IMG/VR virus record: IMGVR_UViG_3300036846_000743
Coordinates: 62,001 to 126,000 of that record
DNA: 64,000 nt
Strand: one strand, 5' to 3'
The notes under the pieces were generated by a model. It was not told the origin of the DNA. It ran no database searches and was given only the letters and a program-made list of their open reading frames with translations. How positions within the stretch are numbered: position 1 is the stretch's first letter; each line of letters starts with the position of its first letter. Shown one piece after another: positions 5,605 through 57,756 of the stretch. The position numbers were made by a program, and so were the translations under genes.

Positions 5605-7272
5605 CTAGATATCAGGCATGTCGGCGTCAACGACGGAAATGCCGATATTGTGTACATCAAGCATGAAAGCTACGGTGCGAGGCGTGACCATATTACCGGG
5701 CTCGTCGGGAATTTCGAGCACTTCGGTGCTGCGGATCCGCCGCATGGTACCGTCGGGCCGCCGGATGGTCCCGAACATGTCGATGGCTCCGGTATAGGCG
5801 CCATCAGGCAGCTGGTCCTGAACCAGATCGGCAAGTAGACTGGCATAAAGCTGACCGATAAAACCCAGCGAGTTGACCAGCTGCATCATGGAAGCCGCGA
5901 TGGCGTCCACGGTCCCCTGATCGACGACGACCGTGGCCCGCTTGCGGATGTCAAAGCTGATTGCCAGGAAGCAGGGAACCGGGGCCTTGACCAGGCAATC
6001 CCCGGCGGGCGCCCCGAAGGACCGGCCGGAAACAGTATCCTGCAAGTCGGCGATCAGGGGCATGGCCAGTAGCGAGACGGCATAGTCGGCCGTGGACTGG
6101 TTCACGATCAGACTGGCAACCGGCGTGTCAGTATCCAGGAACTGGATCGTCGTGGTCTGATAACGACTGTACGCGGCTTCAATGGGATTCACGATGTCGG
6201 GCACGAAGCCGGGGAAGTCGAGATCGAAGGAGCGGTCGTCGCTGGTGATCTCGTAGCCGGCGTCGTCCTGCGACCCTCCCGCAGGCCCGACCCGGTCGAC
6301 CTGGTAGAAGCCGGGGGCATCGGTCGCGGTGATCGAGAGCTGCCAGATTCCGCCAGCGGCGAGTTTCTGGACCAGTGTAGCTGTCTTCGTGACGGTGATC
6401 GATAGCGGCATGTCCTGGGTGCGGGCATAGAGATCGACGCGGCCGAAATGTGAGATCGGCATGACGGTGTGCCGGTCGCGGAGCATCTCGGGATCGCCAG
6501 CGCCGATGATCGAAGTCTGGAGGATCCGGGAGAACTGGTCCATGGCCCTGAGCGAGGCGTCGATCGTGACCCGGTTCGACCAGGCGCGGGCCGCCATGCC
6601 TCCCTGGAGCCGGTTGAGCATCTCCTGGTTGCTCTCGGGGTCGAAGCCGCCGCTGAAGTCGCTCTCGGCGTATGCCCGGTCGAAGTAAGGGATCGGATCG
6701 GTCATGGCCAGGGAGGCTCCCCGGCGGAGCATGCCAGCCGCGCCGGGATCGTCGGCGGTCACCGGGATCGAGAACGAGTAGGTGCCGTCACCTACCGGGC
6801 GGAGCACGCGGTCCGTATCCGTGGTAGCCGTGGCATCGCTGATCCGCGCCGCATAGGCTTGGCCGGGGGTGAACGTGATGCCCCCGGACACGAACTGGGC
6901 TGCCGCCGGCACGACCACCGGAGCCAGGGTGGTAAGAACGATGGTGATCGTGCCGGTCGCGTTCGATCCGGCACCACGTTCGATCCGGAAGTTGGACAGG
7001 GCCCGGTTGACGATGTCATCGTCGGCCAGGGCGGGGTTCTCGGAGATCGCCATCAAGCTGTTCGAGTCCCGCATCAGCTCCATGCGGGCCCGCTGCTCGG
7101 CGCCCAGGATCGATACCAGGTACAGGACGATGTCGTGAATTACGCCCCGCTTGATCTCCAGTTCGGGGAATTGTTCTGCCATCCGCTCGGAGATCTGCTG
7201 GTGCGCCTGGTCCACGAGGGCAGGATCGATCGTTGACAGGTCGAGCACGTCGAGGATATCGGCCATGGGCAT
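5605..7272 (-). CDS. Baseplate J / gp6-like wedge protein (555 aa)
   Basis: Pattern typical of baseplate J: ELEIKRGVIHDIVLY, RGAGSNATGTITI, PGAAGML, FSGGFDPESNQEMLNRL, GRVDLY; directly after a gp25-like gene. Confidence 0.75.
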   Translation of the reverse strand: MPMADILDVLDLSTIDPALVDQAHQQISERMAEQFPELEIKRGVIHDIVLYLVSILGAEQRARMELMRDSNSLMAISENPALADDDIVNRALSNFRIERGAGSNATGTITIVLTTLAPVVVPAAAQFVSGGITFTPGQAYAARISDATATTDTDRVLRPVGDGTYSFSIPVTADDPGAAGMLRRGASLAMTDPIPYFDRAYAESDFSGGFDPESNQEMLNRLQGGMAARAWSNRVTIDASLRAMDQFSRILQTSIIGAGDPEMLRDRHTVMPISHFGRVDLYARTQDMPLSITVTKTATLVQKLAAGGIWQLSITATDAPGFYQVDRVGPAGGSQDDAGYEITSDDRSFDLDFPGFVPDIVNPIEAAYSRYQTTTIQFLDTDTPVASLIVNQSTADYAVSLLAMPLIADLQDTVSGRSFGAPAGDCLVKAPVPCFLAISFDIRKRATVVVDQGTVDAIAASMMQLVNSLGFIGQLYASLLADLVQDQLPDGAYTGAIDMFGTIRRPDGTMRRIRSTEVLEIPDEPGNMVTPRTVAFMLDVHNIGISVVDADMPDI

Positions 7273-7277
7273 CTCCG

Positions 7278-7754
7278 TCAGATCGGGACCACGCCAGGCG
7301 TGGTCGAGATGGGCATGATCACCTTGCGGCTGGTACCGGCCAGGCTCCGGAGCGTGACATGCATGACAATGGTGCCCGACAGGATGGACACCGAGTCCAG
7401 CGTAGCCAAGGCATACCGCTCATCGTCCGGATCGGTAGCCAGCTCCTCGGCGGTGAGCGACAGCTCGAGATCGTTCAGGGCCAGATTGAAAGCGATGAAA
7501 ACATCGGTCTCGGTACGAAGATAGCCCTGACGAAACTGGATCATGAACGTGGTGCCGCGGCCTGGCAGGTAGAGCATGGAGCCCTTCTCGGTGAGCAGCT
7601 CCAGGACGAACCGCTGGGCCAGCTTCTGGACGCCGGTGCAGAGCTGGCCGGCAGCAGCCTCGGTGAAGAGGATCTGCTCAAGCCGGACCTCGCCCATAGG
7701 CTTGGCCCCCTGAAGCGCCAGAACGTCATAGATTCGCAACTCGCCGTTGCTCAT
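7278..7754 (-). CDS. gp25/GpW-like baseplate wedge initiator (start re-placed to ATG 7754)
   Basis: GVQKLAQRFVLELLTEKGSMLYLPGRGT resembles the gp25/GpW signature; ATGA overlap with the upstream gene at 7751-7754. Confidence 0.7.
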   Translation of the reverse strand: MSNGELRIYDVLALQGAKPMGEVRLEQILFTEAAAGQLCTGVQKLAQRFVLELLTEKGSMLYLPGRGTTFMIQFRQGYLRTETDVFIAFNLALNDLELSLTAEELATDPDDERYALATLDSVSILSGTIVMHVTLRSLAGTSRKVIMPISTTPGVVPI

Positions 7755-8215
7755 CCTTGCCCCGACTGTAATGCATCCTGCACATGCTTGAGCACGCCAC
7801 CCAGGAAGACGCCTGCGTCGTAGGAATGACCGAACCGCCGGCCCATCGCGTGAGCGATGCACCGGACCGGTGTGGCGTGCCTGGCACGGAAGGCACGCTC
7901 CATGATCGCGATATAGTCGCCCTGGGTCTTGACCGAGATCACGTCGCCGCAGGTCCCAGGATCGGTACCATCCTGGATCAGCTCGGCGTAATTGGTATCG
8001 ATGTTCTCGCGGTCAAAGCCAGCCGTGATGCCGGCGATATCGAGAAGATCCAGCGCCCCCGCATCCTTGTGCTTGGACTGCACGCTGGTCTCAGGGATGT
8101 TCCATTTGCGGGGCCCATAGCCGCGAGATGCTTTACCCTGCTGACCATCCTGCGTGGTCAGGTCCTTGAGATTGTTCGTGAAGACATCGTCGATCTTGCC
8201 CTTGCTCGCCATCAT
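7751..8215 (-). CDS. Hypothetical protein (154 aa)
   Basis: Translationally coupled on both sides (ATGA). Confidence 0.6.
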   Translation of the reverse strand: MMASKGKIDDVFTNNLKDLTTQDGQQGKASRGYGPRKWNIPETSVQSKHKDAGALDLLDIAGITAGFDRENIDTNYAELIQDGTDPGTCGDVISVKTQGDYIAIMERAFRARHATPVRCIAHAMGRRFGHSYDAGVFLGGVLKHVQDALQSGQG

Positions 8216-9003
8216 AGCACCTCCGAGTCCTCGAGTTCGTTCAGCATCCGCTGGATCCGCGCCGCCCGCTGGCTGACGGCCCCCGGCGAGATCCGCAGCC
8301 GGCGAGCGATCTGGGTGGCCGGCAGCTTGGGAGCACCGTTTAAGCCCATGCCGTACTCTAAGATCACCTGGTCATGCGGGTCGAGGTCATGATAGAGAAA
8401 CTGAGCCCTGAGCATAGATCGATCAGGCCCTTCGACGGCCGGCTCGAACCCGCCACCGCCACTCCCTTCTTCATCCTCATCGGACAGAGCGGCCATCCGG
8501 CCTTCAGGTATTGCCGGCCGGTAGCCCCTGATGTGTGCGATGCGTCGCCGGGACAGCCCTATGTGATCTGACAGCTCCATGTCCGACGGATCACGGCCCA
8601 GCTGATCACGCAGCTCGGTCTCGGACTCGGTCAGGTGCTGTTGATCAAGCGCCACCGCTTCAGGAACCTTGATCGTCTGTGCCTGCTGCGCACTGTAGCG
8701 GCGCAGCCCCTGAAGGTGGGCCATCAGGTGGGTCTTGAGGCTGGCCTTGGTCGGGTCATACTTCTTGGCCGCATCCAGGGCAATCATCCGCGCGCGGCTG
8801 CGCATCATAGGGTTGACGTTCCGGCCGCCGTAGACAGAAAGCCCTTCATCGATCACCGGATTGATCGCTTTCAGGAACTCGTCGGACTGGCCGGGACCGG
8901 GATTGGCTGACCACGCATGAAAGGCGGGAGCGTACTGTGACTCGAGCCGGTCCTTGGGCGCGGCGAAGCCGGGCTCGAGCTTGTACGGGGTGAAACCAGG
9001 CAT
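8212..9003 (-). CDS. Phage sigma70-family RNA polymerase sigma factor (263 aa)
   Basis: Region 2-like AAKKYDPTKASLKTHL, region 3 LGRDPSDMELSDHIGLS, region 4 HTH LDPHDQVILEYGMGLNGAPKLPATQIARRLRISPGAVSQRAARIQRML. Confidence 0.88.
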   Translation of the reverse strand: MPGFTPYKLEPGFAAPKDRLESQYAPAFHAWSANPGPGQSDEFLKAINPVIDEGLSVYGGRNVNPMMRSRARMIALDAAKKYDPTKASLKTHLMAHLQGLRRYSAQQAQTIKVPEAVALDQQHLTESETELRDQLGRDPSDMELSDHIGLSRRRIAHIRGYRPAIPEGRMAALSDEDEEGSGGGGFEPAVEGPDRSMLRAQFLYHDLDPHDQVILEYGMGLNGAPKLPATQIARRLRISPGAVSQRAARIQRMLNELEDSEVL

Positions 9004-9036
9004 CCCAGGGTCCTCAATACGCTGCGTAACGCTTGA

Positions 9037-10653
9037 CTACTTGATATCGACCAGGGGGCATCCCTTGAAAGTCTCCTTGTAGAGCGGATGCGCCTTGATC
9101 GAGGTCTTGTCGTCGCCATTCTCCTTCTCGCTGCGGATGTGCGACAGGTGAAACGACGTGCCGATCATGGGCTGCTCGCCATCCACGGCGATCGAGACCC
9201 GGGCCACGTGGGCGTAGAACGGGGCCGCGAACGCGTCGCCACCTATATGCTGCTCAGCCTCGTTCTCGATCTTGAGCACCGAACCAGGGGCAATATCCAG
9301 CCGGAATGGGCCAGAGCACACGGCCTGCCGGGTGCGGAGCTTCTCCAGGGCGTAGTGAGCCTGCGCATACTTCTTGAGGAACGGGTTGATGGCATCGGTC
9401 AGGCGCTTCTTCACGTCGCCCGGCACGTCGTTAACCTTCGGGCCGCCCGGCTGCACGGCAGTGCCAATGGCGTTGCCCTTGGCGCCGGCCGATGCGCTGG
9501 CGTACAGGCTGGGCGAGTAAAGCCTGGCTGTCCAGTCCGGGCCTTGCTTGACGATGATGACGCCCTTGCTGTCGGGATCAGGCTCGAAGTAGCCGCCGAC
9601 GCCGACCGCAGGCGGGGCACCCTGACCGGACTTCAGGGCCCCGGTCGACGCCGAGGCGAAGGCCATGATCCCGACGGCACGCAAGGGCCGGCCAAGTCCG
9701 CGCATCCATTCAACCTGGGTTTCCTCATTGGTCGTGATGGTGAGGTACTGCTCGCGGTAGCCAGCCATGAACGGCGCCGCGATGGCATCCTCAACGCGAG
9801 GCACAATGGAGAAAAGGAACTGGCTACAGAACATGCCGATCAGCATATCCCAGAGCGTCTGATGAGCAATCTGCGAAGCATGCGAGACGCTGCTGGCAAC
9901 CTGGATCCTGATGCTATTGGTGATATCCGCGTCCGTCTTCAGGTCAAGACCCAGCTTCTGCTGGTATGGGCCGCCGAACCGGTTGAGAGCTGCCAACGCC
10001 TGATCGTTCTTGCCGCCGGGCTCGACGGCCCCGCCGGGAACTCTCGCAAAGAAGTTATCCCTGTTGCAGAGCTTCGTGAGAAACTGCTTTACCGCATCAC
10101 CCCAGAAGTCACTCTCGATGGTTGAGCCGTTCACATACTTGTCAGCAAGGGAATAGGAATAGAAGTTAGCGCCACTGTCATCCACCGGACTGATGGCCCC
10201 ATAGGAAAAGTCACCGATATTGGACGGATGACTGCTCTTGGAAAAGACCGAGCTGAAAGCCATCTCCGACAGCCAGTGTTCCATCTGGATGGTGAACTGG
10301 GCGTTCCCCCGGGAGCGGCTGAAGCCGGCCGCCGTGACGAAGCCGTCGAAGATCCTGACTTCATCACCAGAAAGCCCCAGATCGCCCCCTTGCATAGCCG
10401 ATGAGCCGGACTGGCCCAGCGCATTGGGAGTGATGTAGATCTGGCACGGCGCCCGGTTGACGAAGTTCTCGATCAGTGTGTGAACTGGCGATGGCTGGTT
10501 CTTGAAGTCACGACCCACGGCGAGTGTCGCCGACGCCTGGGGGATCGCGTTCAACTCGTAGTCGACATTGCAGCGGACGCAGGGCATCTCCTGGCCGTCG
10601 ACGACGAGCCTGATCCGCGGATCATAACGTGCCCATGGTGCGGTCGACGGCAT
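9037..10653 (-). CDS. Putative baseplate hub protein (gp27/GpD-like, 538 aa)
   Basis: N-terminal VDYELNAIPQASATLAVG and C-terminal GPFRLDIAPGSVLKI...YAHVARVSI fit contractile-tail hub proteins; position after the tape measure. Confidence 0.6.
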   Translation of the reverse strand: MPSTAPWARYDPRIRLVVDGQEMPCVRCNVDYELNAIPQASATLAVGRDFKNQPSPVHTLIENFVNRAPCQIYITPNALGQSGSSAMQGGDLGLSGDEVRIFDGFVTAAGFSRSRGNAQFTIQMEHWLSEMAFSSVFSKSSHPSNIGDFSYGAISPVDDSGANFYSYSLADKYVNGSTIESDFWGDAVKQFLTKLCNRDNFFARVPGGAVEPGGKNDQALAALNRFGGPYQQKLGLDLKTDADITNSIRIQVASSVSHASQIAHQTLWDMLIGMFCSQFLFSIVPRVEDAIAAPFMAGYREQYLTITTNEETQVEWMRGLGRPLRAVGIMAFASASTGALKSGQGAPPAVGVGGYFEPDPDSKGVIIVKQGPDWTARLYSPSLYASASAGAKGNAIGTAVQPGGPKVNDVPGDVKKRLTDAINPFLKKYAQAHYALEKLRTRQAVCSGPFRLDIAPGSVLKIENEAEQHIGGDAFAAPFYAHVARVSIAVDGEQPMIGTSFHLSHIRSEKENGDDKTSIKAHPLYKETFKGCPLVDIK

Positions 10654-17491: not shown

Positions 17492-20170
17492 TCACACGAT
17501 GATCAGGTAGCCCTGAGATGGGGGCTGCGGATCTGGGTCCTTGAACTTGGGTTGCTCGTAGTCATTCTGGTTATCCTTCCGTGACTTGCTGACCCCATTC
17601 TCGTGGTCGTAGAGGCTGAGATCCATCCTCATGTAGGTATCGTCATCGTCCCACGGCTCCTTGCCGGGATAGGGCATGGTCTCTTCAGATGAACCGCCGG
17701 TGACCGCTGTTTCTTCCCACGTCTTCAATTCCTGGCCGCTGAGCCGGGCCATCTGCTGCCATCGATCCTCGAAGAGCTTGAAGTTCGTGGTGAGATACTG
17801 CTGCGGATTGCGGAAGGTGAAATGGACTGCGCTGATCGTATCGTCATTGCCGGCTCCCTTGTCCGCGTAGAGCCAGTTGGCGAAGATAAGTTGCCAGTTC
17901 TTCGATACAGCGGCCACAGCCTTGGCTTCGTCATCGATAACTGTCTCCAGGTCCTGGATGTCTAGTTCCAGGCTCTCCCCTATGATCGTGCCGACCTTGC
18001 CGTCGTAGTCCTGGGCCAGCGGGCTGCCGAAGTAGCCCGCCACCGACAGGAAGGACTCCAGGGCGAGAATGCCGCCCAGGAAGATGCCCCAGCCCTCGAC
18101 GGAGATCTCCGAGCCGATGATGTTGGACTGGGCCCCCCACACGTGGCTGGTCACGATATTCCCGTCGCTGCCGAAGTTGTCCGTGATCGAATTGGAGACG
18201 TAATTGAGGATCGAGCTGGCCTGCATCGTGATCACCTGCTGGCCCTTGGCGGCGTCGAGAGTGATGGTACCAGGCTGGACATCACCGCCGCCGGTGCGAA
18301 GGTAAATGTTCGTGGCCCAGATGACAGCGTCGCCATGGTCCACCTTGACCTGGAAGCCGCCGCTGCCTACCTCCTCGCCTACCTTGTCCTGGTAGTCGTA
18401 GGCTCCGGGGGCCTTGCACTCGATGAGCACGCCCCCGATATCGCCGGCGTTGCCTCCCAGGAGATGCAAGTTATGTTCGGCCTTGAGCCGCAGGTCCTTC
18501 TTGGTAGTCGACAGGTCCATCGAGTTGTTGGCGCGAAGAATAATGTCGTGGCCGCCCAGGGCATTGAAGTTCCGTCCCGGCTTGGCCCATATATCCCCAG
18601 GGGCAGTCAGGAAAATGTGCCCGCCGCACATCCTGATCTCGGCACCGTAACCATCGCCGAGGACCACTCCGCCATCATCCTGCATGCTCAGATAGGAATG
18701 GTTCGGAAAGTAGCTCACGCCAGGCAAACGATGATCGATCTTCTGCTGAACTGGATCCGGCCGGTTCAGGTAGAAGTTACCGGCCAGATCGCCAAACGTG
18801 ATCGGCGCCTCGACCATCCCGATGAAGGTGTCTTCCTCTTCCGCAATGTTCCAGTCTTTCTTGTGGTAGAAGAACGGGTGCGCGCCCAGCCAGTTGAAGA
18901 CCCAGGCATGGACATCCATGAGGCCGGCGACCTGCTGGAGATGCGGGACCTGCGAGTCGGCCTCGATCTCGCCCGTGATCTTGTGATCCGGGCCGTCGCC
19001 GACCGCGCCAGCAAACTTGTAGTTCTCGTCGGTATCGCCGTTGCCATCCTCGCACCGTTTCATCCGCTTCACTGCCGGGATGGCCGCCCACTTGACGATG
19101 TGAATCGACTTGGCCGATCGCAGCGAGTAACGGCCGTCGACCCCGATGTTCTCCTCGAACAGCGCCAGGTTGGTGTTATCCCCGCTGTAGGTATAGGCAT
19201 CGTCCTGATATGGGGCCTGGATCATCCGCTTGCCGCCTTGCCCCAGGTAGCCCCGGAACTGGAGCGAGCGGTGGAACGGCTGCTGGTCGTCTTCCCCGGG
19301 CTCCCAGGAAGCGTAGTGGGGCTTGCTGATCTGAACTTCCTGTGGCGAGAAGTCCTGGAAGGGATCATCGACCGCGACCATGACGCCGGTCTGTTCCCAC
19401 GGGTAGGGCGTGAAGCCGTCGTAATGATAAACCTCAGCCTGGTCGACAGCGATCTCAGACTCGTGGCCACCCGAGAACGCCTGCATGTTAAACCCGGCCA
19501 GCCGCAGCAGCTGATCGTGATAGAACGCGAAGACACCAGTCGCTTCATCGACGGCTAGCTGGACCATGAACGGATCGAGTAATACCCGCAGCCCGGTCTC
19601 GGTGATCGCGCCCCATTCGCACATTGACATCCCGTCGAATGGCCGGCCGTTGGACCAGTCGGCGATGCCGCCGCTGCTCTCACACCCGAACGGCGTGGAG
19701 TGGGTGTGATCGACCCGCAGGCCACAGCGGCTGGCCTGATGAACGAAGTCTGATAGTGCCAGGTTCGGGGCCGTCATCGCGATGGGAATTACGCCCAGGA
19801 TGATCCCGTAGTCACCAAACGGAGGCCGCAGGACGTAGACCTCGGACCCGGGGGCGATCGAGTTGATCGGGTGGGGACCAAGAGGCATGAGCCCGCCGGC
19901 CGCCAGGGCCGTACAGAGCACCACCCCGGCCTGGCGCTCGAGCATCACGCGGTAGCAGTGGGCGTAGGCGATGACGTCCACGACCCGGCCGCGAAAAATA
20001 GTGGGCCCGAAGCCCATGTTCTTGTAGAGATCGTAAGCAGTCCCCTGAGCGTCATCGATCGAGGACAAGAGCGAGGTGGGAGTGAGCTTCCGGTTCCAGT
20101 CCAGTCCATACGCTGCCTGAGACATCGGCCCGAACAAGGGCCGACGCCCCTGGTTATTCTGCGCCGCCAT
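17492..20170 (-). CDS. VgrG/gp5-like baseplate hub-spike protein (892 aa)
   Basis: N-terminal OB-fold-like RGRVVDV...APGSEVYV; C-terminal beta-helix-like LSMQDDGGVVLGDGYGAEIRMCGGHIFLTAPGDIW repeats. Confidence 0.65.
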   Translation of the reverse strand: MAAQNNQGRRPLFGPMSQAAYGLDWNRKLTPTSLLSSIDDAQGTAYDLYKNMGFGPTIFRGRVVDVIAYAHCYRVMLERQAGVVLCTALAAGGLMPLGPHPINSIAPGSEVYVLRPPFGDYGIILGVIPIAMTAPNLALSDFVHQASRCGLRVDHTHSTPFGCESSGGIADWSNGRPFDGMSMCEWGAITETGLRVLLDPFMVQLAVDEATGVFAFYHDQLLRLAGFNMQAFSGGHESEIAVDQAEVYHYDGFTPYPWEQTGVMVAVDDPFQDFSPQEVQISKPHYASWEPGEDDQQPFHRSLQFRGYLGQGGKRMIQAPYQDDAYTYSGDNTNLALFEENIGVDGRYSLRSAKSIHIVKWAAIPAVKRMKRCEDGNGDTDENYKFAGAVGDGPDHKITGEIEADSQVPHLQQVAGLMDVHAWVFNWLGAHPFFYHKKDWNIAEEEDTFIGMVEAPITFGDLAGNFYLNRPDPVQQKIDHRLPGVSYFPNHSYLSMQDDGGVVLGDGYGAEIRMCGGHIFLTAPGDIWAKPGRNFNALGGHDIILRANNSMDLSTTKKDLRLKAEHNLHLLGGNAGDIGGVLIECKAPGAYDYQDKVGEEVGSGGFQVKVDHGDAVIWATNIYLRTGGGDVQPGTITLDAAKGQQVITMQASSILNYVSNSITDNFGSDGNIVTSHVWGAQSNIIGSEISVEGWGIFLGGILALESFLSVAGYFGSPLAQDYDGKVGTIIGESLELDIQDLETVIDDEAKAVAAVSKNWQLIFANWLYADKGAGNDDTISAVHFTFRNPQQYLTTNFKLFEDRWQQMARLSGQELKTWEETAVTGGSSEETMPYPGKEPWDDDDTYMRMDLSLYDHENGVSKSRKDNQNDYEQPKFKDPDPQPPSQGYLIIV

Positions 20171-20230
20171 TGCAAACCACCTTGCGGTGAGGTTACGGGC
20201 ACAAGGCCCAGAAAGACAGACTGCTAACTG

Positions 20231-20794
20231 CTATGCGACTAACGTACCACCAAAGCCACCAAGCCCGCCGCCACCCGTGTTACTGCCGAAGTCGCCGACG
20301 AGAGCGTTAGCGCCGGCTGTACCGTCGTTGTTTGACATCTGGATGAACATCAGCTGGAGGTTCTCGTTGATCACCATGTCCTGCGCAGCGACGCTGATGC
20401 CGACGCTGGTGAGCACACAGTAGCTGAACTTGAAGTTGCCATTCTTGAACTTGTCGGTCGTGTAGCATCCGGTGCCGATGTAGAGCATGATCGTGTTCTG
20501 GCTGGCGTTGCAGACGTCGCCGAACCGCGAGTAGAACGCCGACATGATCACGCCCGGGCCTACAACCCGGCCAACCGTCATGTTGCCCTGGGTACGGCCC
20601 CCGACGTAGTAGGTCAGGTCCGAGCCAACTTCCCAGAGCCGGGTAACCTGCTGCTGGTAGTTGATGTTGACCTGTTGCACAAGCATCCCCGACCCCAGCA
20701 GATTGCCTGCCTGGCCAGAGAAGGTGAACACCGCACCGTCGGCGGTGAATGCCTTGCCGAACCCATTGGTCGCCTTATTGAAAATGTCAGGCAT
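20231..20794 (-). CDS. Tail tube protein (187 aa)
   Basis: Directly downstream of the sheath; LVQQVNINYQQQVTRLWEVGS...ENLQLMF is typical of contractile tubes. Confidence 0.75.
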   Translation of the reverse strand: MPDIFNKATNGFGKAFTADGAVFTFSGQAGNLLGSGMLVQQVNINYQQQVTRLWEVGSDLTYYVGGRTQGNMTVGRVVGPGVIMSAFYSRFGDVCNASQNTIMLYIGTGCYTTDKFKNGNFKFSYCVLTSVGISVAAQDMVINENLQLMFIQMSNNDGTAGANALVGDFGSNTGGGGLGGFGGTLVA

Positions 20795-20851
20795 TTCTGC
20801 TCAACCTCCGTGTCGTGGAAGCGGGTCAGGCACCCGCAGGTTGTGGTCCTG

Positions 20852-23632
20852 TTAGACGACCAAGTGAATCTCAAGGTTGTTCATCGGGTAGGGCAGCGTG
20901 ACATCGATGACGCACACGACCCGATCCGCGAGGATGGCGTGTTTCTGAAGGGTGATGATCGTGGCGTCGACCAGCTGAGCACCCAGTCGCGGGACATACC
21001 CGTTGGACTTCAGGAAGTCGATGCACGACTCGATCTCGGTACCGAGCACCAGCAAGGCCGTCGGCGTGACGTTCATCCGGCCGATATAGATCGCCAGCCG
21101 CTGCTGGAACAGGTACGAGATCGAATCCAGGTTGGACGTGACCATCTCCTCGGACGAGTTCACGTCGGTGTTGTCGGTGGTCAGCGCATGCCGGTTGTAG
21201 ACCGTCCCGTCCGGGGCCTGCGTCACGATCCAGGTCCCGGCGCCAGCCATGGTGTTGAGCTGAGCACCACCCAGGAAGTTGGTGGTGCGAGTCAGATCAT
21301 CAAAGCCCGCCACCGCGACATTGGTCAGGCCCTGATGCGGGACGACGCCCGATCGCAGGCCGGCCAGCGCCGCAGCCAGGTAATAGCCCTCCTGAAGAAT
21401 ACCACCGGAACCAACGACGTCGGGCCAGACTGCCTTCACGCGACGGCTGCTGAAGCTGCCGGCCTGCTGGGCGAGATCCTGAGCGATCTCGTCCTTGTTC
21501 AGGAAACGCCAGACTTCCATTTTCTGGGCCACCGTCACCGGCTGATCGGGCCCGGCCATGAGCAGAAGCGAATCCTCGTTGAGCACCTCGTCGATGACGT
21601 ATTCATCGAAGATCTCGTTGCCGCCACTATCGATCCCGTAATTGGTCCGGACCACATCGCCGGGCCGGACCAGATTGGCCAGGAAGTTGGAATTACCGGC
21701 GGGTACAGTCAGCAAGGTGAACTGATTGCCGCTGGCATTTGGATTGTCGGCAATCTCGGCCATGACGACGGTGCCGTCCGCCGAGGTCGCATCGGAGACA
21801 ACTGCATCCTGGCTATTGGCCTTGATCGAGCAGAACACCGCGCGCCAGTGAGCTTGTTCTGCCGCTGACTCGTCCTGGACGTGAGCCGCATACAGATCGA
21901 TGATATTGCGATCGAACGTCAATGGCACCAGGTTGTAGACGTCGTCGCGGCCGATCAGGAGTGACAGGCATGCAACCCAGCTATCGATGTCATCGGGATT
22001 GGCGATAGCCGTGAACTTCACCTCGGTGCCATTGGCGTTGGCGAGCGCCTTGTAGACGCCCCACTTGAGCGGGTTGTCGGGCGAAAGCGGGCCAGGGATC
22101 ATCGTGTCCAGATCGCCAACGTCGAAGATCGTGCCGACCTGGCTGGCTAGATCAGGGATCCAGGCACGATACTCGAGATAGACCAAGCCGGACTCGACCG
22201 GCAAAGGCCGCGGCTCGCCGCCGGCAGTGAACGTCTCGTCATAGGCTTCGACGCCGCCGTGAATGATGACCTGGGTATCTTCCTGCTCCCAGTTAGTGAT
22301 ACCATCGACCGTCTCGTCGACCATGATGTTGCGTTCGACGGAGAGGGTCAGGTCGAGATCGGTTGCCGGCGTCGGGGTCCAGAGCTGTGCCGGCAGGTTG
22401 TTGCCCAGGACTAGCGTGGACATACGGCCATCTTGCGCAGCGAGGACCTGGATATAGAAACGATCACCCTTGCGGATGCCAGCGCCGGCCGTGAAAAGGA
22501 TCGTCACGCCCTGTGTGCCGACCGGGTAAGGGCTGCCCAGAGTCGAGGTAGTTACCGGCAGCGGCTGGCTGCTATCGGTGCCGTGGATGGTGATAGCACG
22601 GAACTGCGGGCAGGCCGTGAGATCGTCACTGATGGTGCCGCCCCTGCTGAACTCGATCACGTAGGTCGTCGACTGGGTGCCACGATACACACCGCCCGAC
22701 ACGGCAGTTATGGTCGTGTAGTCGTCATTGACTTCGATCTCCCAGGCTTCACCGGCGAGTAAATTGGTGCCGCCTGTCGTCGTGAATGTCAGTGCCAGCC
22801 CGCGACGTCCCACCGGGAAGGACGTGCCGGAAGCTGCTGGAGATACCGCCGCGACATCGTCGTAGCCGCTGGCGGTCGTGATTCTCAGCGAGGCGGTTGT
22901 CAGGTCTCCGCCGACCGATGAATTGATCACTGTGACCGTGTAGGTATCGACCAGCACGCCGTCAGCCAGGGCACTGTAGTTGGTGGTACTAGCCGTCGGC
23001 ATGATCGTCGGCGGCGGAGTGCCGAGGCCGGTAACGACAGCACTGGCCGTCTGAGTCTGCCCGTTGGTCGGAGGCGAGTCTTCGGTCACCGGATCAACAG
23101 TTGCGCCGATCGGATCGGCCAGAATAGCTGTGACATAGCTGTCGATCGTGTAGCTCGTGCTCGATACCACACCGCGGATATGCACCCGGTCGCCTGGCTG
23201 CACATCGCGATCGTAGAGCGCAGGGTGTCGCGGATAACTGGCGCCGTTGGCCTCGAAGCCGTAGATCGAACCCTTGAGATTGATCTGATTGGCTGCCGTC
23301 GGCACCACGGTGACGGCGCCGGCAGCGTCACCGGACGCGGGAAGATCAACGCCGATCTTCTTCACGAAATACTGGAGCATCGCCTTGTCGATGTAGACCT
23401 TGGTGTAGCTCTGGTCGATGACTCCACCCGGAGGCCGCTGGGGCCATCCAGCAACGAGATCGTTGAGCGGATCGTACGCACCCACGTAGGCGAGCAGCTT
23501 CTCGTTGGGGTCTGCGTATCGGAGCAGGAATGCGTGCGGCCCTGAGATGTGTGCCCGCAGCTGGGTGATCAGCGCGGTCGGGACGACATCGAATTCCTGG
23601 AAGACAAGAACCTGCGGCAGAATGTAGGCCAT
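20852..23632 (-). CDS. Tail sheath protein (about 926 aa; start re-placed to MAYILPQV)
   Basis: N-terminal YILPQVLVFQEF; C-terminal sheath core (YNLVPLT, AAALAGLRSGVVPHQGLTN, EEMVTSNLDSI, VTLPYPMNNLEIHLVV); followed by the tube gene. Confidence 0.85.
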   Translation of the reverse strand: MAYILPQVLVFQEFDVVPTALITQLRAHISGPHAFLLRYADPNEKLLAYVGAYDPLNDLVAGWPQRPPGGVIDQSYTKVYIDKAMLQYFVKKIGVDLPASGDAAGAVTVVPTAANQINLKGSIYGFEANGASYPRHPALYDRDVQPGDRVHIRGVVSSTSYTIDSYVTAILADPIGATVDPVTEDSPPTNGQTQTASAVVTGLGTPPPTIMPTASTTNYSALADGVLVDTYTVTVINSSVGGDLTTASLRITTASGYDDVAAVSPAASGTSFPVGRRGLALTFTTTGGTNLLAGEAWEIEVNDDYTTITAVSGGVYRGTQSTTYVIEFSRGGTISDDLTACPQFRAITIHGTDSSQPLPVTTSTLGSPYPVGTQGVTILFTAGAGIRKGDRFYIQVLAAQDGRMSTLVLGNNLPAQLWTPTPATDLDLTLSVERNIMVDETVDGITNWEQEDTQVIIHGGVEAYDETFTAGGEPRPLPVESGLVYLEYRAWIPDLASQVGTIFDVGDLDTMIPGPLSPDNPLKWGVYKALANANGTEVKFTAIANPDDIDSWVACLSLLIGRDDVYNLVPLTFDRNIIDLYAAHVQDESAAEQAHWRAVFCSIKANSQDAVVSDATSADGTVVMAEIADNPNASGNQFTLLTVPAGNSNFLANLVRPGDVVRTNYGIDSGGNEIFDEYVIDEVLNEDSLLLMAGPDQPVTVAQKMEVWRFLNKDEIAQDLAQQAGSFSSRRVKAVWPDVVGSGGILQEGYYLAAALAGLRSGVVPHQGLTNVAVAGFDDLTRTTNFLGGAQLNTMAGAGTWIVTQAPDGTVYNRHALTTDNTDVNSSEEMVTSNLDSISYLFQQRLAIYIGRMNVTPTALLVLGTEIESCIDFLKSNGYVPRLGAQLVDATIITLQKHAILADRVVCVIDVTLPYPMNNLEIHLVV

Positions 23633-23680
23633 CGCTATCGGAGCCTCCATGCAGATCGAACGATGTACTCAGTCCATTGT

Positions 23681-26650: not shown

Positions 26651-29600
26651 TCAGCTTCCCGGAGGATACGGGGTCTGCCCCCGGACCGGCGGGACCGCAG
26701 CGTTGGTATCCACGTCGGCCTTCCAGGCTGTCGTCGTATCCTCGGCATAGATAGTCATCGGCAGGATCCCACTCGTTGCGCTCCAGTTCGTCGTCCATTG
26801 TATCAGCGACCGTGCTGCCTGGAGTATCGTTCGCCTGATCGTGGAAGCCGCGGAAGCGAAGCTCCGTGTCAGAGTCGCATCCGCGATGGCCGTGATCTCG
26901 GTCTGGGGCAGATCGATGAAGTCATACGTGTCGTAGGCTACGATGTCGAATTTGACATTGGTCGCCGGGAACCCTGGAACGACAGCCCTCAAGATGGTCT
27001 CGCCCAGCGTGCTGCGATCGGCAGTATCGCCGGCCAGCTGGTACCAGCCATCGCCAATCTCGCTGACGACCCCAGCGGCCGGCACCCAGCTTGTGGCCCC
27101 GGACTTCAGAAGCTGGACCGTCGGATGGGCGCCGAGGATCGGAGTGATCCGGTCGGCTTGGGTCATCAGGAAGCCGATCGGATAGTAAGTGATGGCTCGC
27201 GGATCGGCCCTGCGGCCCGCCACGGCCGACGACTTGCGATCCTTGCTGGCCATGGAGATCGGAATGCGGGTCCCGGTCCGGGGCGACATCGGCCGGCCCT
27301 GGATTGGATGGGGAGCGATATCGGTGATGGTATCGTGGCTGCGGACCCTGACCCGGCACACGACCGTGTCTGTCAGCTGCACGACTTCCGGCAGCTTCAA
27401 GAGCATCGTGTCGACCGTGTGACTCTCCTGGTACGACACCACTGCCAGAGTATCGGTCTGATAGGGCAGATCACGCCCGCCGCTGATCGTAGCGTCGGTG
27501 CTGTGCCAGAAGACATGGAAGTTGGCACAGACCGTGTCCGTACTGTGGTGATCGGTGAAGGTTCCTCGCTTCAGCCCCCAGGTGTAATGGGGCACCCAGG
27601 ACGAGGCTCGGCGCCCGGTGTCAGTACTGTGAGTCTTCGCCCGCGTCGCGTAGGCCAGCGTGTTAGTCGTGTGCGTGGTGATCACGGTCCGGAACGCTCG
27701 AAGATCAGTCTTGTGCGTCCGGGTTCGCGTGCCGTACTTCAGAGCATCAGTCTTGCTCGAGGCCGTGCGCACGGCGTAAAGCAGGCTATCGGTCGCGGAC
27801 GATCTCGCGAAGGTCGCACGGGCTCGCGTGTCGGTATTGTGGGCCCGGCTGCTCGTCCCTCGTTTCACCGTGTTGGTGGTATGAGTTCGAGTACTTGCCT
27901 TGAGCAGCAGAGCATCGGTGGCGTGGGTCACAACGGCCGTTTGCCGCAGCCGCGAATTCGTGGCATGGGTGCGTATGCTGGTGCCGCGGCACCGGATATC
28001 GGTACGGTGAGTGCAAGTCACCGCCCCGAGGCAATCAACATCCGTGGTGTGCGTCCTGAAGCCGACGCCACGCATCGACGGGAAGGAGTCAGCACCGTGA
28101 GCGATGATCGAACCGAGTCGGCAGCGCGTGTCAGTGCCGTGCGAACGCACCGAAGTGAGATAACGCAGGGCGCTGGTGGTGTGCGTCTTGATCCTAGTTC
28201 CGGCGCGGTCAACATCGGTCGAATGCACCTGCGTCGTTACGCTGCGTATTGCGGCACGAACGTCGGTGGTATGCGCCCAGACAACATTGAGTCGGCAGCG
28301 CGTGTCAGTGCCGTGCGACCGCGCCGGAGTAAGATAACGCCGCGTGTCGGTCGTGTGGGTTCGAGTCTGGCTCCCGGCGAGATCAGCATCGGTAGTATGG
28401 GCCTGGACGACGGTGCCGCGGAGCGCAAGCTGGCTATTCGTACTGTGAGTGATCGTATTGGCGCCACGAACCAGCGCATTGGTGCCATGCGGACGGCCCG
28501 CAACGGCGCGTTTCAACGCATCAGTCGTCTGGGTCCGGGTCGTTGACCCGGCAAGATCGGCATCAGCGAAGTGCGACTGGTATCCAACGCCAAGCTGGGC
28601 GAGCCAGCTATCGGTGTTGTGGCTGCAACTGTGGGTGTCAAGAAGCCAGGCATCGGTACTGTGCGTGCAGACGGCAGCGGCGAAAGTCCCGACATCAGTT
28701 GTGTGGCTGTGAGTGATCGCTCCGCCGAGATCGACGTCAGTCGTGTGAGATTGAAGCGCGACGCCAAGCTGAGCGGTCCAGCTAGCAGTGCTATGAGCCC
28801 GGCTGGAAGTAGCAAGGAGCCGAGCGTCGGTGCTGTGGATACGGACGGTGGTAGCGAAAGCCAGGGCGTCAGTCGCATGCGTCCAGGTAACCGACCCGTG
28901 GAGATCGATGTCGGTGTAGTGAACCCAGGAAGAGGTACTGAGCCTGGAAACCCGGCTGTCTGTGCTGTGAGTCCAGGTGACCGTCGTTGCCACCTGGACC
29001 AAGGTTCGCAGGACCAGCTGCGTCGCGCGCAGGTTGACACCAGTCGGCTGCACGAGGGTACGAACTGACAGCTGGGTATCACGCAGGTTGACACCAGTCG
29101 GCTGCACGAGAATGCGAACCGGCAGCTGAGTGTCGCGCAGGTTGATGCTAGTTGAAGTGCTGGTAGTGTGAGTCTTGGTCAGAGCGCCCTTGGCGTCCGT
29201 GTCGGTGACGTGAACCCGCGGGTAGCCCACCGGAGTCGCAACTATGCTGTCCGCGGTATGACTGGACAGTGATGACGCAAGGAGCAGAGCATTGGTGCCG
29301 TGATTGACAGTTCGAGACAGGTAAGTCGCACTGTCAGTCTTGTGAACCTGGAGCAGGGCTCCCTTGGCGTTCGTGTCGGTGCCGTGAACTCGCGGGTAGG
29401 CTGCCGAGATCGCGACCGTAGTGTCGGTTGTATGGGTTCGAGTCTGGGTCGCCCTGAGACTGACATCAATGCTATGGGTTTTCGCGACGGTGGTCAGCCG
29501 CGAAGTCTGCATATCAGTGCTGTGAGTCTTGATGGTCGTCGCGCGCACCAGAATATCGGTGCTATGAGCCTTCACGGCGATCCCTGCCGTCAAGGCAAGT

Positions 29601-39032: not shown

Positions 39033-40289
39033 GCCTGGGTGGCGTTGACCTTTCAAGGCTACGAGATCAGCGTACACGTATTTTAACTCTTGCAGCTTGT
39101 GCCAGTCACTCGGATAGCACTCCCAAACCCGCACGGCCTGAAAGCGACAGATGATCTCCGGGCAATACGCTGCGTAACGCCGATCACAATAATACCGAAA
39201 GCTCAAGTCATTCCAAAAGGAGGCATGGGTCGGATCGCAAAAAGCCCCCTTGCCGCCCGTCGAGGGCGTGCGGCTGATGATCCAGCCGCCCGGCACCAGG
39301 CAGCGCCACAGATCGTTCATGACCGGGATGACGTGCTCCCGGGGGATATGCTCCAGGAAGTCAGCCGCCCGGAAGATGCCGACCGAATTATCCTCGAACG
39401 GTAGCCCCTTGGTCACGTCACAGATGATATCGGCATCTCGCAGGTCGATCGACTTGTAGCCTTCGGGACAGTCAATCCGGCCGCCCAGATCGAACCTGGG
39501 AAGCCCGTTGCGGCGGGACCATTCATGCGCCAGCTTCCAGGTATACCGGTTCTGGTTCCTGTGATGGACTTTTTCCAGAGTCCCGTCTTCGCGGAAGGTA
39601 CGGAAGCTATTCTGCGCCTCCTCCGCCACGTTGATGCGCTCCCGGTACATATAGAGTGGCCGCGGGACGTGATGGAAGGGCACTTCAGCCAGGTACATGC
39701 GGCAGATCATGTCGTGATCGTCGCAGATGGGCAGTTCCGGGTCATGACCGTCGACGAGGGCGTAAGCGGTCTTGGTCCAGGCCCGGACGTGATTGGGAGC
39801 ATAGTAGATCTGGCGGAGACTTGAAGCTGTCGGCTCGAAGGCGCTCGTCGCCATGTAGGACCGGCCGGCATACTGGAACGGGTAGCTCCGCCATCCCTGG
39901 TCCTCGCCGAAGGTATGACTGCTGTGGTCGACCCAGAATTGGATGAAGTCCGAGTAGACGAACGCTGGCTGTTCCGGATCATACACTGCTGCCGCCACTT
40001 CGGTGAGGCAATCGGGTGTCAGCATGTCATCGTGATCCAGCTCGACGATCACTGGTCCAGCAGCCTGATTGCAAAGCTGCCGCTTCAGGGCCCCGACATT
40101 ACCGACCATGGTCCAGTCTTCAGGCAACACCTTGACGCGAGCATCCGTCATGATGCGCGCAGGGACCCTGGCACCACCATTGGGCAAGAGCAACCAGTCC
40201 CAATCCGTATGTGTCTGTGCCTGTAGGCTGGTCCATGCATCGTCCAGCCAACTTATATCGTGGGTCGGCGTCACAACGGTCAAATGCAT
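39018..40289 (-). CDS. GT2 glycosyltransferase fused to a class I SAM methyltransferase (start re-placed to MHLTVVTPTH)
   Basis: GT-A: TVVTPTH, LQAQTHTDWDWLLL, VELDHDD, DDHDMICR, LYMYR. MTase: RFDLGG, DIICDVTKGLPFEDNSV, DFLEHI, MNDLWRCLVPGGW, DPTHASFW. Confidence 0.9.
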   Translation of the reverse strand: MHLTVVTPTHDISWLDDAWTSLQAQTHTDWDWLLLPNGGARVPARIMTDARVKVLPEDWTMVGNVGALKRQLCNQAAGPVIVELDHDDMLTPDCLTEVAAAVYDPEQPAFVYSDFIQFWVDHSSHTFGEDQGWRSYPFQYAGRSYMATSAFEPTASSLRQIYYAPNHVRAWTKTAYALVDGHDPELPICDDHDMICRMYLAEVPFHHVPRPLYMYRERINVAEEAQNSFRTFREDGTLEKVHHRNQNRYTWKLAHEWSRRNGLPRFDLGGRIDCPEGYKSIDLRDADIICDVTKGLPFEDNSVGIFRAADFLEHIPREHVIPVMNDLWRCLVPGGWIISRTPSTGGKGAFCDPTHASFWNDLSFRYYCDRRYAAYCPEIICRFQAVRVWECYPSDWHKLQELKYVYADLVALKGQRHPGLQLI

Positions 40290-41202: not shown

Positions 41203-42144
41203 TCAGGCGAAGTCAGCGCGGGCGAGGCCGCCGGTGTGGCCGATCGTGCCACCCATGGTCTCGTAGGCGAAGAACTCGAGAAGATATGCTTCTCTCTTTA
41301 TATACATCGTCGTGTCTTCCAAAACATACATTTTCCCAATAAACTTCGGATCAGCATACATGAATATGGTATCCGTAGGCACCAGATCATGTTTGATGCT
41401 GATGATCCAACGCTTATCGAGAAAGTCGGTCTCGCTCCAGCCATTTCGCAGCACGTCCTGGCTGAAGTCACCGCCCATCTCATCACGGCCCCACTTCATG
41501 ACCTCCTTGATGGAGATGTTGTTGATCAAGACGGTCGCGGCTTCGAGCCGCGCATCAGTGCTCGGCATGATCTTGAGCGAATCCAGCACCGAGTCGCGCG
41601 TGATGCCGCCATGGATCGTGACCCATTGGGGAATGCCCGACCAGGGCACGTTCAAGTCAGCGCCCATGAGCGCTAAGTTGGTTGCCCCTATGAGTTTGCT
41701 ATCCTCTTCCGCCAGCATGTCCTTGATAGCATTGTCAGAAAGGACCTGCCGGATGTCCATGATCCAGGTGCGGAGTTCGTCGACGTCCTTGGTGAACCGT
41801 GGTGTCACGATGCGATCGAACGCAACGCGATATCGCGGGCCGCGGATGTAGACGTTGGTGGGCAGGGTAGCGAAGGGAATGGAAATGGCAGCCGGCGAAT
41901 CCGGCTCTTTGTCCACAATCTTCACTGGTTTGTCGGTATCAACCTGCCGGTCCAGCTCATCATTGGCGATCTGGAGCGGCGGCATGATGCGTCGTGCGAA
42001 TCCATCTTCACGCATCTTGATGCGAGTGAAGTCGTTGACCGCGTCGATCGCGGTCTTGATCATCCCCGGGTTCGTCAGGTTAGCGAAGAGCGTCTCATTC
42101 ATGAGCTGCACTTCGGACCTGGTCATGATGGCGCCAGCTGCCAC
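41203..42144 (-). CDS. Major capsid protein, HK97/encapsulin-like fold (about 313 aa)
   Basis: REDGFARRIMPP...RYRVAFDRIVTPRFTKDVDELR...DIRQV...DMLAEEDSKLI...LEFFAYETMGGTIGH; GTG 42144 with GGAGGAG; follows protease, scaffold and decoration genes. Confidence 0.82.
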   Translation of the reverse strand: MAAGAIMTRSEVQLMNETLFANLTNPGMIKTAIDAVNDFTRIKMREDGFARRIMPPLQIANDELDRQVDTDKPVKIVDKEPDSPAAISIPFATLPTNVYIRGPRYRVAFDRIVTPRFTKDVDELRTWIMDIRQVLSDNAIKDMLAEEDSKLIGATNLALMGADLNVPWSGIPQWVTIHGGITRDSVLDSLKIMPSTDARLEAATVLINNISIKEVMKWGRDEMGGDFSQDVLRNGWSETDFLDKRWIISIKHDLVPTDTIFMYADPKFIGKMYVLEDTTMYIKREAYLLEFFAYETMGGTIGHTGGLARADFA

Positions 42145-42196
42145 TTTAGTCTCCTCCGTGAATGGGTATCCTGACGAACAAACGACGACGATTGAC

Positions 42197-42814
42197 TCAA
42201 GTGCACTTGGGGACGTAAACCGGCCAGAACGACAAGACCGGCACCCGATGGTGATTGATGTGATCAGCACGACTGACAACGGCACAGATCCCATTGGTCA
42301 AGTTGGTGACCGCAGTGCCCGGAGCCGGAAATGCCGTCCAGAACGCGGTAGCACCCAGCTTGCCAGCGAAGGATCGATCGACGCCGGTACCGACCGGGAA
42401 CATGGCCTCGGTGGGTGCGGTCAGCTGCTGACCAGGGGTGTAGTGGACGGTGGGATTCTGCGTGGGATCGCCCTGGAAGAATTCCGTCGTCTCCAGCTCG
42501 AAGCCGCCGGCGGCGACCAGGCCGGACATCTTGCCCGTGGGCGCGATGGCGGTCCAGTTATTCCCGCCAGGGTTCTGAACATCCAGCTCATGGGACCCCT
42601 GGAGCAGGAAGATCCCCATGTTGCTGGGGCCGAGACCCAGCTCGAACTCACCAGCTGCGTTGACATGGACGACGCTCCCGCCATAGACGGGATCAACCGT
42701 CACGTTGGCCGACAGAAACGCGTCGAAGTCAAGGGCAGCCTCATCGGGCCACCCTTTGAGTTCATCGAGGCAATGCTCGAACATCAGAATTGGACCGGTG
42801 TAAGCGGTAACCAT
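42197..42814 (-). CDS. Capsid decoration/cement-like protein (205 aa)
   Basis: Immediately upstream of the MCP; beta-rich, with GGFELETTEF and YTPGQQLTA. Confidence 0.55.
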   Translation of the reverse strand: MVTAYTGPILMFEHCLDELKGWPDEAALDFDAFLSANVTVDPVYGGSVVHVNAAGEFELGLGPSNMGIFLLQGSHELDVQNPGGNNWTAIAPTGKMSGLVAAGGFELETTEFFQGDPTQNPTVHYTPGQQLTAPTEAMFPVGTGVDRSFAGKLGATAFWTAFPAPGTAVTNLTNGICAVVSRADHINHHRVPVLSFWPVYVPKCT

Positions 42815-49740: not shown

Positions 49741-49756
49741 AGCGTTACGCTGCGTA

Positions 49757-57747: not shown

Positions 57748-57756
57748 TCGACCCGC

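Follow-up and report, generated by a model that had tools for sequence, protein, structure and literature searches.

Jumbo phages that encode their own multisubunit RNA polymerase (RNAP) are generally described as lacking sigma factors, so what is a sigma-70-type gene doing among the baseplate genes of a phage that carries such an enzyme? The gene lies in a 64,000-nucleotide window (positions 62,001 to 126,000) of IMG/VR record IMGVR_UViG_3300036846_000743, a 226-kb, 61% GC soil phage. A preliminary description, made from the sequence alone, held that a complete region 2-3-4 sigma factor is ATGA-coupled inside the tail operon, 45 kb from the phage RNAP. It also inferred that the factor either drives late promoters by positive feedback or is packaged with a virion RNAP for early transcription, and that a phage with its own core and a bacterial-type sigma would be nearly autonomous in transcription, whereas phiKZ-type enzymes use highly diverged sigma-like subunits.

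The observation itself is confirmed. The open reading frame (ORF) spans window positions 8212-9003 on the minus strand and encodes a 263-aa protein, P0001, with an ATG start, a GAGGA motif 7 nt upstream and a GC3 of 0.75 like that of its neighbors. Plus-strand bases 8212-8215 read TCAT, which is ATGA on the coding strand, so that the TGA stop of the sigma gene overlaps the ATG of the next ORF. All of the genes discussed here are on the minus strand, a point that the preliminary description did not mention.

Identification as a sigma factor rests on profiles and on a predicted structure; the protein falls below every curated family cut-off. Pfam gives no hit to Sigma70_r2 and only sub-threshold hits to Sigma70_r3 (17.2 bits; cut-off 25.3) and Sigma70_r4 (13.8 bits; cut-off 24.1), and 19 NCBIfam sigma models match, all far below cut-off. 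However, 125 homologues were found, and a profile made from 31 homologues matches solved SigA, RpoS and SigB chains from region 2.2 to region 4.2 (E 4e-13 for SigA), with one match (S. aureus SigB, 8x6g_H) starting at profile position 13. An AlphaFold2 model (pLDDT 82) searched with Foldseek hits only sigma factors, over about 250 columns, with the full length aligned to sigma chains. “Complete region 2-3-4” is therefore right at the fold and profile level. The family is essentially restricted to phages, with only 4 hits in 185,579 species genomes, all of them in MAGs.

Degeneracy of regions 2 and 4 had been named in advance as an outcome that would count against the interpretation. The sigma2 domain (8680-8931; residues about 25-108, regions 1.2/2.1-2.4) corresponds to helices in the model, and regions 2.2-2.4 align to SigA. 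However, the classic aromatic residues of region 2.3 that are used for −10 melting are not conserved: the equivalents of Y430, W433 and W434 of E. coli sigma-70 are H92, A95 and H96, although those of T429, Q437 and R441 (T91, Q98 and R102) are kept. The sigma3 domain (8524-8661; residues about 115-160) has three helices in the model, aligns to region 3.0/3.1 of SigA, includes the sub-threshold Pfam hit at residues 127-155 and carries a nearly invariant GRDPS motif. It is followed by an acidic, low-confidence linker that resembles region 3.2 (8422-8523; residues about 161-194), with pLDDT below 50 at residues 168-191. The sigma4 domain (8227-8421; residues about 195-259) aligns to region 4 and has Pfam Sigma70_r4 and helix-turn-helix hits at residues 224-251; G241, A242, Q245 and R246 are invariant across the family, and V243 and S244 nearly so.

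The gene is embedded in a baseplate module. Upstream is a 538-aa gene (9037-10653) that resembles gpD/Mu gp44/VgrG baseplate hubs, although this is only a lead, from feature and structure look-alikes in the ESM Atlas (gpP/Mu gp44-like, late control D and VgrG). Downstream are the overlapping 154-aa ORF (7751-8215), which gave no family hit and nothing usable in the ESM Atlas, and a 194-aa ORF (7278-7862), also of unknown function, whose true start is probably later. These are followed by a 555-aa baseplate wedge gene (5605-7272; Baseplate_J, PF04865, E 1.9e-9, above cut-off; PHROG 6, E 9e-13), which is homologous to the structural protein gp13 of Salmonella phage Arash. A 932-aa tail sheath gene lies at 20852-23650 (PHROG 279, E 3.3e-9). 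RNAP, head, sheath and baseplate genes all lie in one co-directional 64-kb block, and sigma, between the hub and wedge genes, lies in this late/structural block. The order hub, sigma, 154 aa, 194 aa, Baseplate_J is kept in about 70 of 77 loci, down to about 30% sigma identity: the hub-like gene is syntenic in 69 of 77 loci and the 154-aa and 194-aa ORFs in 67 of 77 each. Junctions are tight, and the gap between sigma and the downstream gene is 24 nt or less in 65 of 67 loci.

The RNAP genes lie at 54389-63458, 45.4 kb away, and encode a bacterial-type enzyme made from a beta::beta'N fusion and a separate beta'C, with no alpha or omega found. In this genome, the fusion gene is interrupted. Its first part (59859-63458; Pfam Rpb2_6, Rpb2_3 and LAGLIDADG_3) encodes residues 1-851 of beta, followed by a 343-aa LAGLIDADG intein (59877-60905), then SGRYG and a stop created by a 7-nt insertion. 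The second part (57827-59815, 662 aa; Rpb2_6, Rpb1_1 and Rpb1_2) encodes the C-terminal end of beta fused to the N-terminal half of beta', including the clamp helices and the ADFDGD active site. It matches bacterial beta' with E 3e-74, and its catalytic D570, D572 and D574 are invariant. The C-terminal half of beta' (54389-56392, 667 aa; Rpb1_4 and Rpb1_5) is homologous to Arash gp216. A group I intron was considered for the insert, but Rfam found nothing, and comparison with intein-less relatives showed that both junctions are in frame, starting with Cys and ending Asn|Ser, so the insert is an intein. An assembly error was considered for the 7-nt insertion, but a Logan contig assembled independently from the likely source run, which is not an independent sample, reproduces it exactly. 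The integrity of the partner enzyme in this phage is thus uncertain. Pfam, phmmer and tblastn searches found no second RNAP core that would make a virion/non-virion pair as in phiKZ.

The sigma family accompanies this RNAP. Among IMG/VR records carrying the sigma, 31 of 34 also carry the phage beta', including 25 of 25 records that are at least 90% complete, although co-occurrence within one clade may simply reflect shared ancestry. Arash and Vibrio phage D181 share the fusion-type RNAP and carry the sigma, while RHph_Y65, Va2 and EP_H11 have a more distant beta' and lack it. Megablast found no similarity to catalogued phages, and tblastn with P0001 found only Arash; published work on moraphage and PaBG concerns unrelated lineages. 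A family profile found no paralogue of P0001 in the genome. However, a second, more canonical sigma, which the preliminary description missed, is encoded outside the window. It is not universal in the clade: a second sigma was detected in 5 of 25 relatives with Pfam r2 and in 1 of 25 with the protein itself.

Modeling the contact between sigma and the beta' clamp was one of the tests suggested beforehand. P0001 is modeled onto the phage beta'N with an ipSAE of 0.76 against a best control of 0.04, a mark that was reached by 58 of 80 solved complexes and 2 of 110 mismatched pairs. The three runs agree in at least 91% of contacts, and partner pLDDT is at least 80. The predicted interface joins sigma residues 37-44 and 61-76 to beta'N residues 364-434, which correspond to the clamp-helix region by the alignment of phage residues 275-660 to E. 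coli beta' 159-550; sigma residues 160-172 and 186-192 also contact beta'N in the model. The interface is thus canonical, but the model may recall solved sigma/beta' complexes and does not distinguish phage core from host core, which leaves the question of core binding undecided.

Presence in virions, another point raised in advance, can be seen only in a distant homologue. Arash gp10, annotated “RNA polymerase sigma factor” (OQ632216), is homologous to P0001 (hhalign probability 99.3%, E 1.5e-20), although only about 22% identical, and sits in the same context, between a structural/cell-wall-hydrolase gene and baseplate genes. Mass spectrometry of Arash particles (PMC10585845) detected gp10 with 24 unique peptides and 467 spectra. 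The beta::beta'N protein gp206 was the top protein, with 128 peptides and 3516 spectra, and the beta'C protein gp216 had 40 peptides and 1210 spectra. By our arithmetic, the counts per residue are about 2.0, 2.3 and 2.0, respectively. However, that preparation listed 116 of about 270 proteins, including nucleotide-metabolism enzymes, and its authors allow for carry-over of abundant intracellular proteins; no expression, proteome or binding data exist for the soil phage or its close relatives. The second Arash sigma, gp196, is not listed. The Arash paper listed gp10 but did not propose a phage holoenzyme.

How the gene is regulated is less clear. The 33-nt spacer upstream of it holds a palindrome-type element, GTTACGCAGCGTATTG (9015-9030, minus strand), 26 nt upstream of the sigma ATG. 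The genome has 8 exact 13-mers of it against 0.006 expected, and about 14 sites, mostly intergenic. The palindrome, GTTACGC-N-GCGTAAC, lies just upstream of sigma, the portal gene and other genes whose function was not determined, and is kept at this position in the 3 closest relatives. Its function is unknown, but it hints at separate regulation, so that sigma may not be a purely passive member of the operon, a point that the preliminary description missed. No RNA run holds the locus, and no transcription start-site or in vitro data exist. Within the 18-kb block around sigma, no sigma-70-type promoter or terminator signal exceeds chance. K-mer enrichment yielded only the palindrome and a weak AAACCTGT...CTAGATCC pair at two sites, and no promoter could be assigned to the sigma.

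The current thinking is that P0001 is the cognate initiation factor of the phage's own RNAP. In this view, the gene is expressed late, together with baseplate genes; sigma assembles with newly made phage RNAP; and the holoenzyme is packed into virions and injected with the DNA, so that early phage promoters can be read without the host polymerase. Sigma2 would sit on the beta' clamp helices, while the conserved sigma4 helix-turn-helix and regions 2.4/3.0 would read a phage-specific promoter. The analysis establishes that the protein is a three-domain member of the sigma family, that its position in the baseplate module is deeply conserved and that it co-occurs with the phage RNAP. Late expression, binding to the phage core, packaging and a role in early transcription are inferences from indirect evidence; neither expression timing nor dependence of early transcription on host RNAP was measured. 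We consider this model more likely than not, but no more than that. The earlier interpretation is thus partly supported: the core idea of a phage RNAP paired with a bacterial-type sigma stands, and of its two alternatives, the packaging route fits better.

The alternative that survives best, although it appears unlikely, is that sigma serves the phage RNAP only inside the cell, as a late factor that directs newly made enzyme to structural-gene promoters, including its own operon, without being specifically packaged. Its place in the late structural block agrees with this, the repeated palindrome could mark late transcription units, and the Arash proteome may include carry-over of abundant late proteins. 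However, a sigma encoded only inside the operon it activates needs another way to start, and most relatives show no second canonical sigma that could do the early job. Moreover, Arash gp10 and the RNAP subunits were detected with many unique peptides at near-equal per-residue counts, unlike the 2-peptide metabolic enzymes. Positive feedback of this kind is not excluded.

Less likely still is that sigma redirects the host RNAP to phage promoters, as T4 gp55 and SPO1 gp28/gp34 do, and that the phage RNAP uses some other specificity factor or none. The architecture is canonical, with a region 2.2-like helix that could also fit a bacterial core, and reviews assign phage sigma homologues to host RNAP. 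Against this, the family is found, by the counts above, only with the fusion-type phage RNAP, no other sigma-like partner for the phage core is conserved across the clade, the docking model fits the phage beta', the gene is placed late and the Arash homologue is virion-associated. A degenerate sigma-fold protein with a non-initiation role (a structural virion component, a DNA-binding regulator or a decoy for the core enzyme) would agree with the missed cut-offs and the lost region 2.3 aromatics, but is very unlikely given that all three domains are retained, with strong conservation of the sigma4 recognition helix and the region 2.4/3.0 motifs across more than 100 homologues, and that the predicted holoenzyme-like contacts include the region 3.2 linker.

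Among described systems, Arash is the closest, with the same RNAP type, although it is a 181-kb enterobacterial phage. Bacterial group 1-3 sigma-70 factors (SigA/RpoD, RpoS, SigB/F, FliA) share the sigma2-sigma3-linker-sigma4 architecture, and the clamp-helix contact predicted for P0001 matches theirs, but P0001 has no region 1.1. The phiKZ gp68 and AR9 gp226 proteins are also phage-encoded promoter-specificity subunits of multisubunit RNAPs that lack alpha and omega, but they serve non-virion enzymes, and reviews describe them as having no recognizable sigma-70 sequence similarity, whereas P0001 is a recognizable family member paired with a much less diverged core. The virion RNAPs of phiKZ and AR9 and that of N4 follow the proposed logic of a polymerase made late, packaged and injected to read early genes, but use either a second dedicated multisubunit enzyme or a giant single-subunit enzyme, with no sigma-70 factor. 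T4 gp55 and SPO1 gp28/gp33-34 are phage-encoded sigma-70 family members that set temporal classes of transcription, but they act on the host core in phages that have no RNAP of their own and are not encoded inside the baseplate module; gp55 is a minimal, sigma2-only factor, unlike the three-domain P0001.

Reviews up to 2026 state a clear rule: jumbo phages with multisubunit RNAPs lack sigma homologues, and phage sigma homologues serve the host polymerase. This lineage breaks that rule, pairing a bacterial-type core, tethered as a beta-beta' fusion, with a recognizable sigma, and since cultured members exist (Arash and D181), the question can be addressed directly. A bolder, tentative proposal, to which we give slightly less than even chances, is that a widespread and essentially undescribed lineage of roughly 180-230-kb myophages, comprising soil and aquatic metagenome contigs plus Arash and D181, packages a complete bacterial-type holoenzyme consisting of the beta::beta'N fusion, beta'C, the baseplate-module sigma and possibly an SNF2-like helicase, and injects it to start infection. 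This would be the first sigma-70-dependent virion RNAP and a single-core alternative to the two-polymerase strategy of phiKZ and AR9. If the holoenzyme is packaged, it offers a simple, tractable model of host-independent transcription, a minimal bacterial-type holoenzyme for structural work and a possible evolutionary intermediate between cellular RNAPs and the highly derived phiKZ-type enzymes.

The record of 226,073 bp, of which the window covers bases 62001-126000, is an IMG/VR virus genome with 61% GC that is rated 100% complete by CheckV, and its sequence is present in a soil-metagenome run. Almost all convincing genes lie on the minus strand. The preliminary description, which placed a sigma-70-type open reading frame among baseplate genes, holds up: the ORF at 8212-9003 (minus strand) is real and encodes a protein of 263 aa, P0001, with an ATG start preceded by GAGGA 7 nt upstream. 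Its TGA stop overlaps the ATG of the next ORF (7751-8215) as ATGA. Only genetic code 11 was used in translation.

Curated libraries barely see this protein. Pfam yielded sub-threshold Sigma70_r3 and Sigma70_r4 hits and nothing for r2, PHROG 351 (“RNA polymerase sigma factor”) matched at E 9.5e-7, and 19 NCBIfam sigma models matched, all of them far below cut-off. More sensitive tests settle the identity. A profile made from 31 of the 125 homologues found matches solved SigA, RpoS and SigB chains from region 2.2 through region 4.2, with a best E of 4e-13, and the match to S. aureus SigB starts at profile position 13. An AlphaFold2 model (mean pLDDT 82) shows helical bundles at residues 25-108, 115-160 and 195-259, joined by a disordered acidic linker, and a Foldseek search with this model returned only sigma factors, aligned over about 250 columns. 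P0001 is therefore a three-domain member of the sigma-70 family, most like groups 1-3 and not like the ECF sigmas. However, in the profile alignment the equivalents of E. coli Y430, W433 and W434 are H92, A95 and H96, although the T429, Q437 and R441 equivalents are kept. The sigma4 recognition helix (G-A-V-S-Q-R) is invariant or nearly so across the family.

Downstream of the sigma gene are two small conserved ORFs of 154 and 194 aa, followed by a Baseplate_J wedge gene (5605-7272) that scores above the Pfam cut-off. The upstream gene (9037-10653) resembles gpD/Mu gp44/VgrG baseplate hubs, although this is only a lead. Further along are a tail sheath gene (20852-23650), a 1971-aa protein in the structural block (26651-32566, minus strand) with a Laminin_G_3/concanavalin-like lectin domain (Pfam E 6e-22) and no other recognisable domain, a major-head candidate (41203-42294) and the RNA polymerase (RNAP) genes (54389-63458). 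The RNAP, head, tail, sigma and baseplate genes form one uninterrupted co-directional block that spans the whole 64-kb window, and no sigma-70-type promoter or terminator signal exceeds chance between 3 and 21 kb. The distance from the sigma gene to the nearest RNAP gene is 45.4 kb, in agreement with the 45 kb given previously.

A palindrome, GTTACGC-N-GCGTAAC, is repeated at about 14 mostly intergenic sites in the genome, with 8 exact 13-mers against 0.006 expected. Within the window it occurs at 9015-9030, 28236-28250, 39166-39178 and 49744-49758, and sites elsewhere in the genome include those at positions 1928, 13534, 38962, 127808, 156480, 163597, 173962, 197315 and 219342. One copy lies 26 nt upstream of the sigma ATG and another lies upstream of the portal gene. 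The function of the element is unknown, and it could be an operator for a dimeric regulator, a promoter element or an RNA hairpin. The copy before sigma is kept in the three closest relatives but not in distant ones. Outside the window, two AT-richer intergenic regions around genome positions 9441 and 12329 (minus strand) share a bipartite motif, AAACCTGT, followed after 16-19 nt by CTAGATCC. AACCTGT is also enriched in intergenic DNA, with 7 occurrences against 0.7 expected. There are too few sites to call the motif a promoter.

The genome has only one RNAP core set, and no alpha or omega subunit was detected. The enzyme is clearly bacterial-type: the beta'N profile matches bacterial beta' at E 3e-74, aligning phage residues 275-660 to residues 159-550 of E. 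coli beta', and the catalytic Asp triad (D570, D572, D574) is invariant. In relatives, the beta gene is fused in frame to the N-terminal half of beta', giving open frames of about 1460-1500 aa, and the gp206 protein of Salmonella phage Arash (1525 aa) has the same arrangement.

In the present genome, however, the fusion gene is interrupted (59858-60905, minus strand). A 343-aa LAGLIDADG intein (59877-60905; C852...N1194|S), which starts with Cys and ends Asn|Ser, sits inside the conserved GDKM|SGRYG motif and is directly followed by a 7-nt insertion (59858-59864) that creates a stop, so that the remainder is a separate ORF of 662 aa starting at an internal Met. The enzyme might work as a split, be rescued by frameshifting or be defective, and the data examined here do not discriminate between these possibilities. 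Close relatives lack both features, and two of them were found to have the uninterrupted sequence, while an independent Logan contig of the probable source run reproduces the insertion exactly. Among the relatives designated G002, G005, G009, G014, G022, G024, G028 and G030, the open frame holding the beta' active-site domain is in several cases 1825-2515 aa instead of about 1470 aa, and in a few others it is short (163-636 aa), which suggests that intein or endonuclease insertions and splits are frequent in this RNAP gene across the lineage.

The sigma family is abundant in metagenomes and in IMG/VR contigs of about 190-216 kb. In 77 loci examined, the order hub, sigma, 154 aa, 194 aa, Baseplate_J is kept in about 70, down to about 30% sigma identity, and the junction to the downstream gene is tight, with a gap of 24 nt or less in 65 of 67 loci. 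Of 34 long records carrying the sigma, 31 also carry the phage beta', including 25 of 25 records that are at least 90% complete. Among cultured phages, the family profile finds the sigma in Arash (E 2.9e-25) and in Vibrio phage D181 (E 2.5e-21), which share the fusion-type RNAP at 33% identity, but not in RHph_Y65, Va2 or EP_H11, whose beta' is more distant. In 185,579 cellular species genomes, the family appears only four times, always in MAGs.

A second, more canonical sigma factor of 289 aa is encoded outside the window, at genome positions 20153-21019 (minus strand; 1006-1872 of locus L010). It passes the Pfam Sigma70_r2 cut-off in hmmscan, whereas r4 clears its cut-off only in the whole-genome scan (25.5 bits) and scores 22.9 against 24.1 in hmmscan. 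This protein is weakly similar to Arash gp196. A counterpart was detected in only 5 of 25 complete relatives, so it is not the clade-wide factor.

A complex model of P0001 with the 662-aa beta-C/beta'N protein passes its controls, with an ipSAE of 0.76 against a best control of 0.04. That mark was reached by 58 of 80 solved complexes and 2 of 110 mismatched pairs, although these calibration counts hold only roughly since alignments built in this study were used. The three runs agree in at least 91% of contacts, and partner pLDDT is at least 80. The predicted interface is the canonical one, in which sigma helices at residues 37-44 and 61-76 sit on beta'N residues 364-434, the stretch aligned to the clamp-helix region, while the region 3.2-like linker contacts further beta' elements. 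The model shows likeness to known holoenzymes; it does not show binding, and it does not separate phage core from host core.

The strongest outside evidence comes from the published virion proteome of Arash (PMC10585845). Arash gp10 is homologous to P0001 (hhalign probability 99.3%) and sits in the same gene context, and it was detected with 24 unique peptides and 467 spectra. The top protein was gp206 (beta::beta'N), with 128 peptides and 3516 spectra, while gp216 (beta'C) had 40 peptides and 1210 spectra and the adjacent helicase gp217 had 38 peptides and 1148 spectra. When the spectra are divided by protein length, gp10, gp206, gp216 and gp217 give about 2.0, 2.3, 2.0 and 2.4, respectively (calculated here), which fits a near-equimolar complex. 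The authors themselves caution that abundant intracellular proteins may be carried over. The metabolic enzymes in the list mostly rest on 2-3 peptides, although some rest on more (for example, the RNA ligase Gp143, with 14), and the second Arash sigma, gp196, is not listed. In the present genome, a protein of 2977 aa encoded outside the window (134681-143614, minus strand) has a C-terminal part of about 470 aa that is 32.5% identical to gp217, which is encoded next to beta'C in Arash, and it may be an RNAP-associated SNF2-like helicase.

Reviews state that RNAP-encoding jumbo phages have no sigma homologue and that phage sigma homologues act on the host core, and phiKZ gp68 and AR9 gp226 have no recognisable sigma-70 sequence similarity. 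Literature searches found no description of a phage multisubunit RNAP paired with a sigma-70-family factor. The Arash paper lists the proteins but does not draw that conclusion.

The reading favoured here, which is more likely than not but by no means certain, is that P0001 is the cognate sigma of the phage RNAP, made late with the baseplate proteins, packaged with the enzyme and used for early transcription after injection. The family membership of the protein, its conserved position and its co-occurrence with the RNAP are results of the analysis, while its late synthesis, its pairing with the phage core, its packaging and its early role are inferred. The earlier interpretation, which offered either positive feedback on late promoters or packaging with a virion RNAP, is supported in part. 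The foremost alternative, a sigma for the phage RNAP that acts only inside the cell as a late factor, is possible but considerably less likely, and a sigma that serves the host RNAP is more doubtful still. A role other than initiation is very unlikely. Phage sigmas and packaged phage RNAPs are each already known, but their combination is not.
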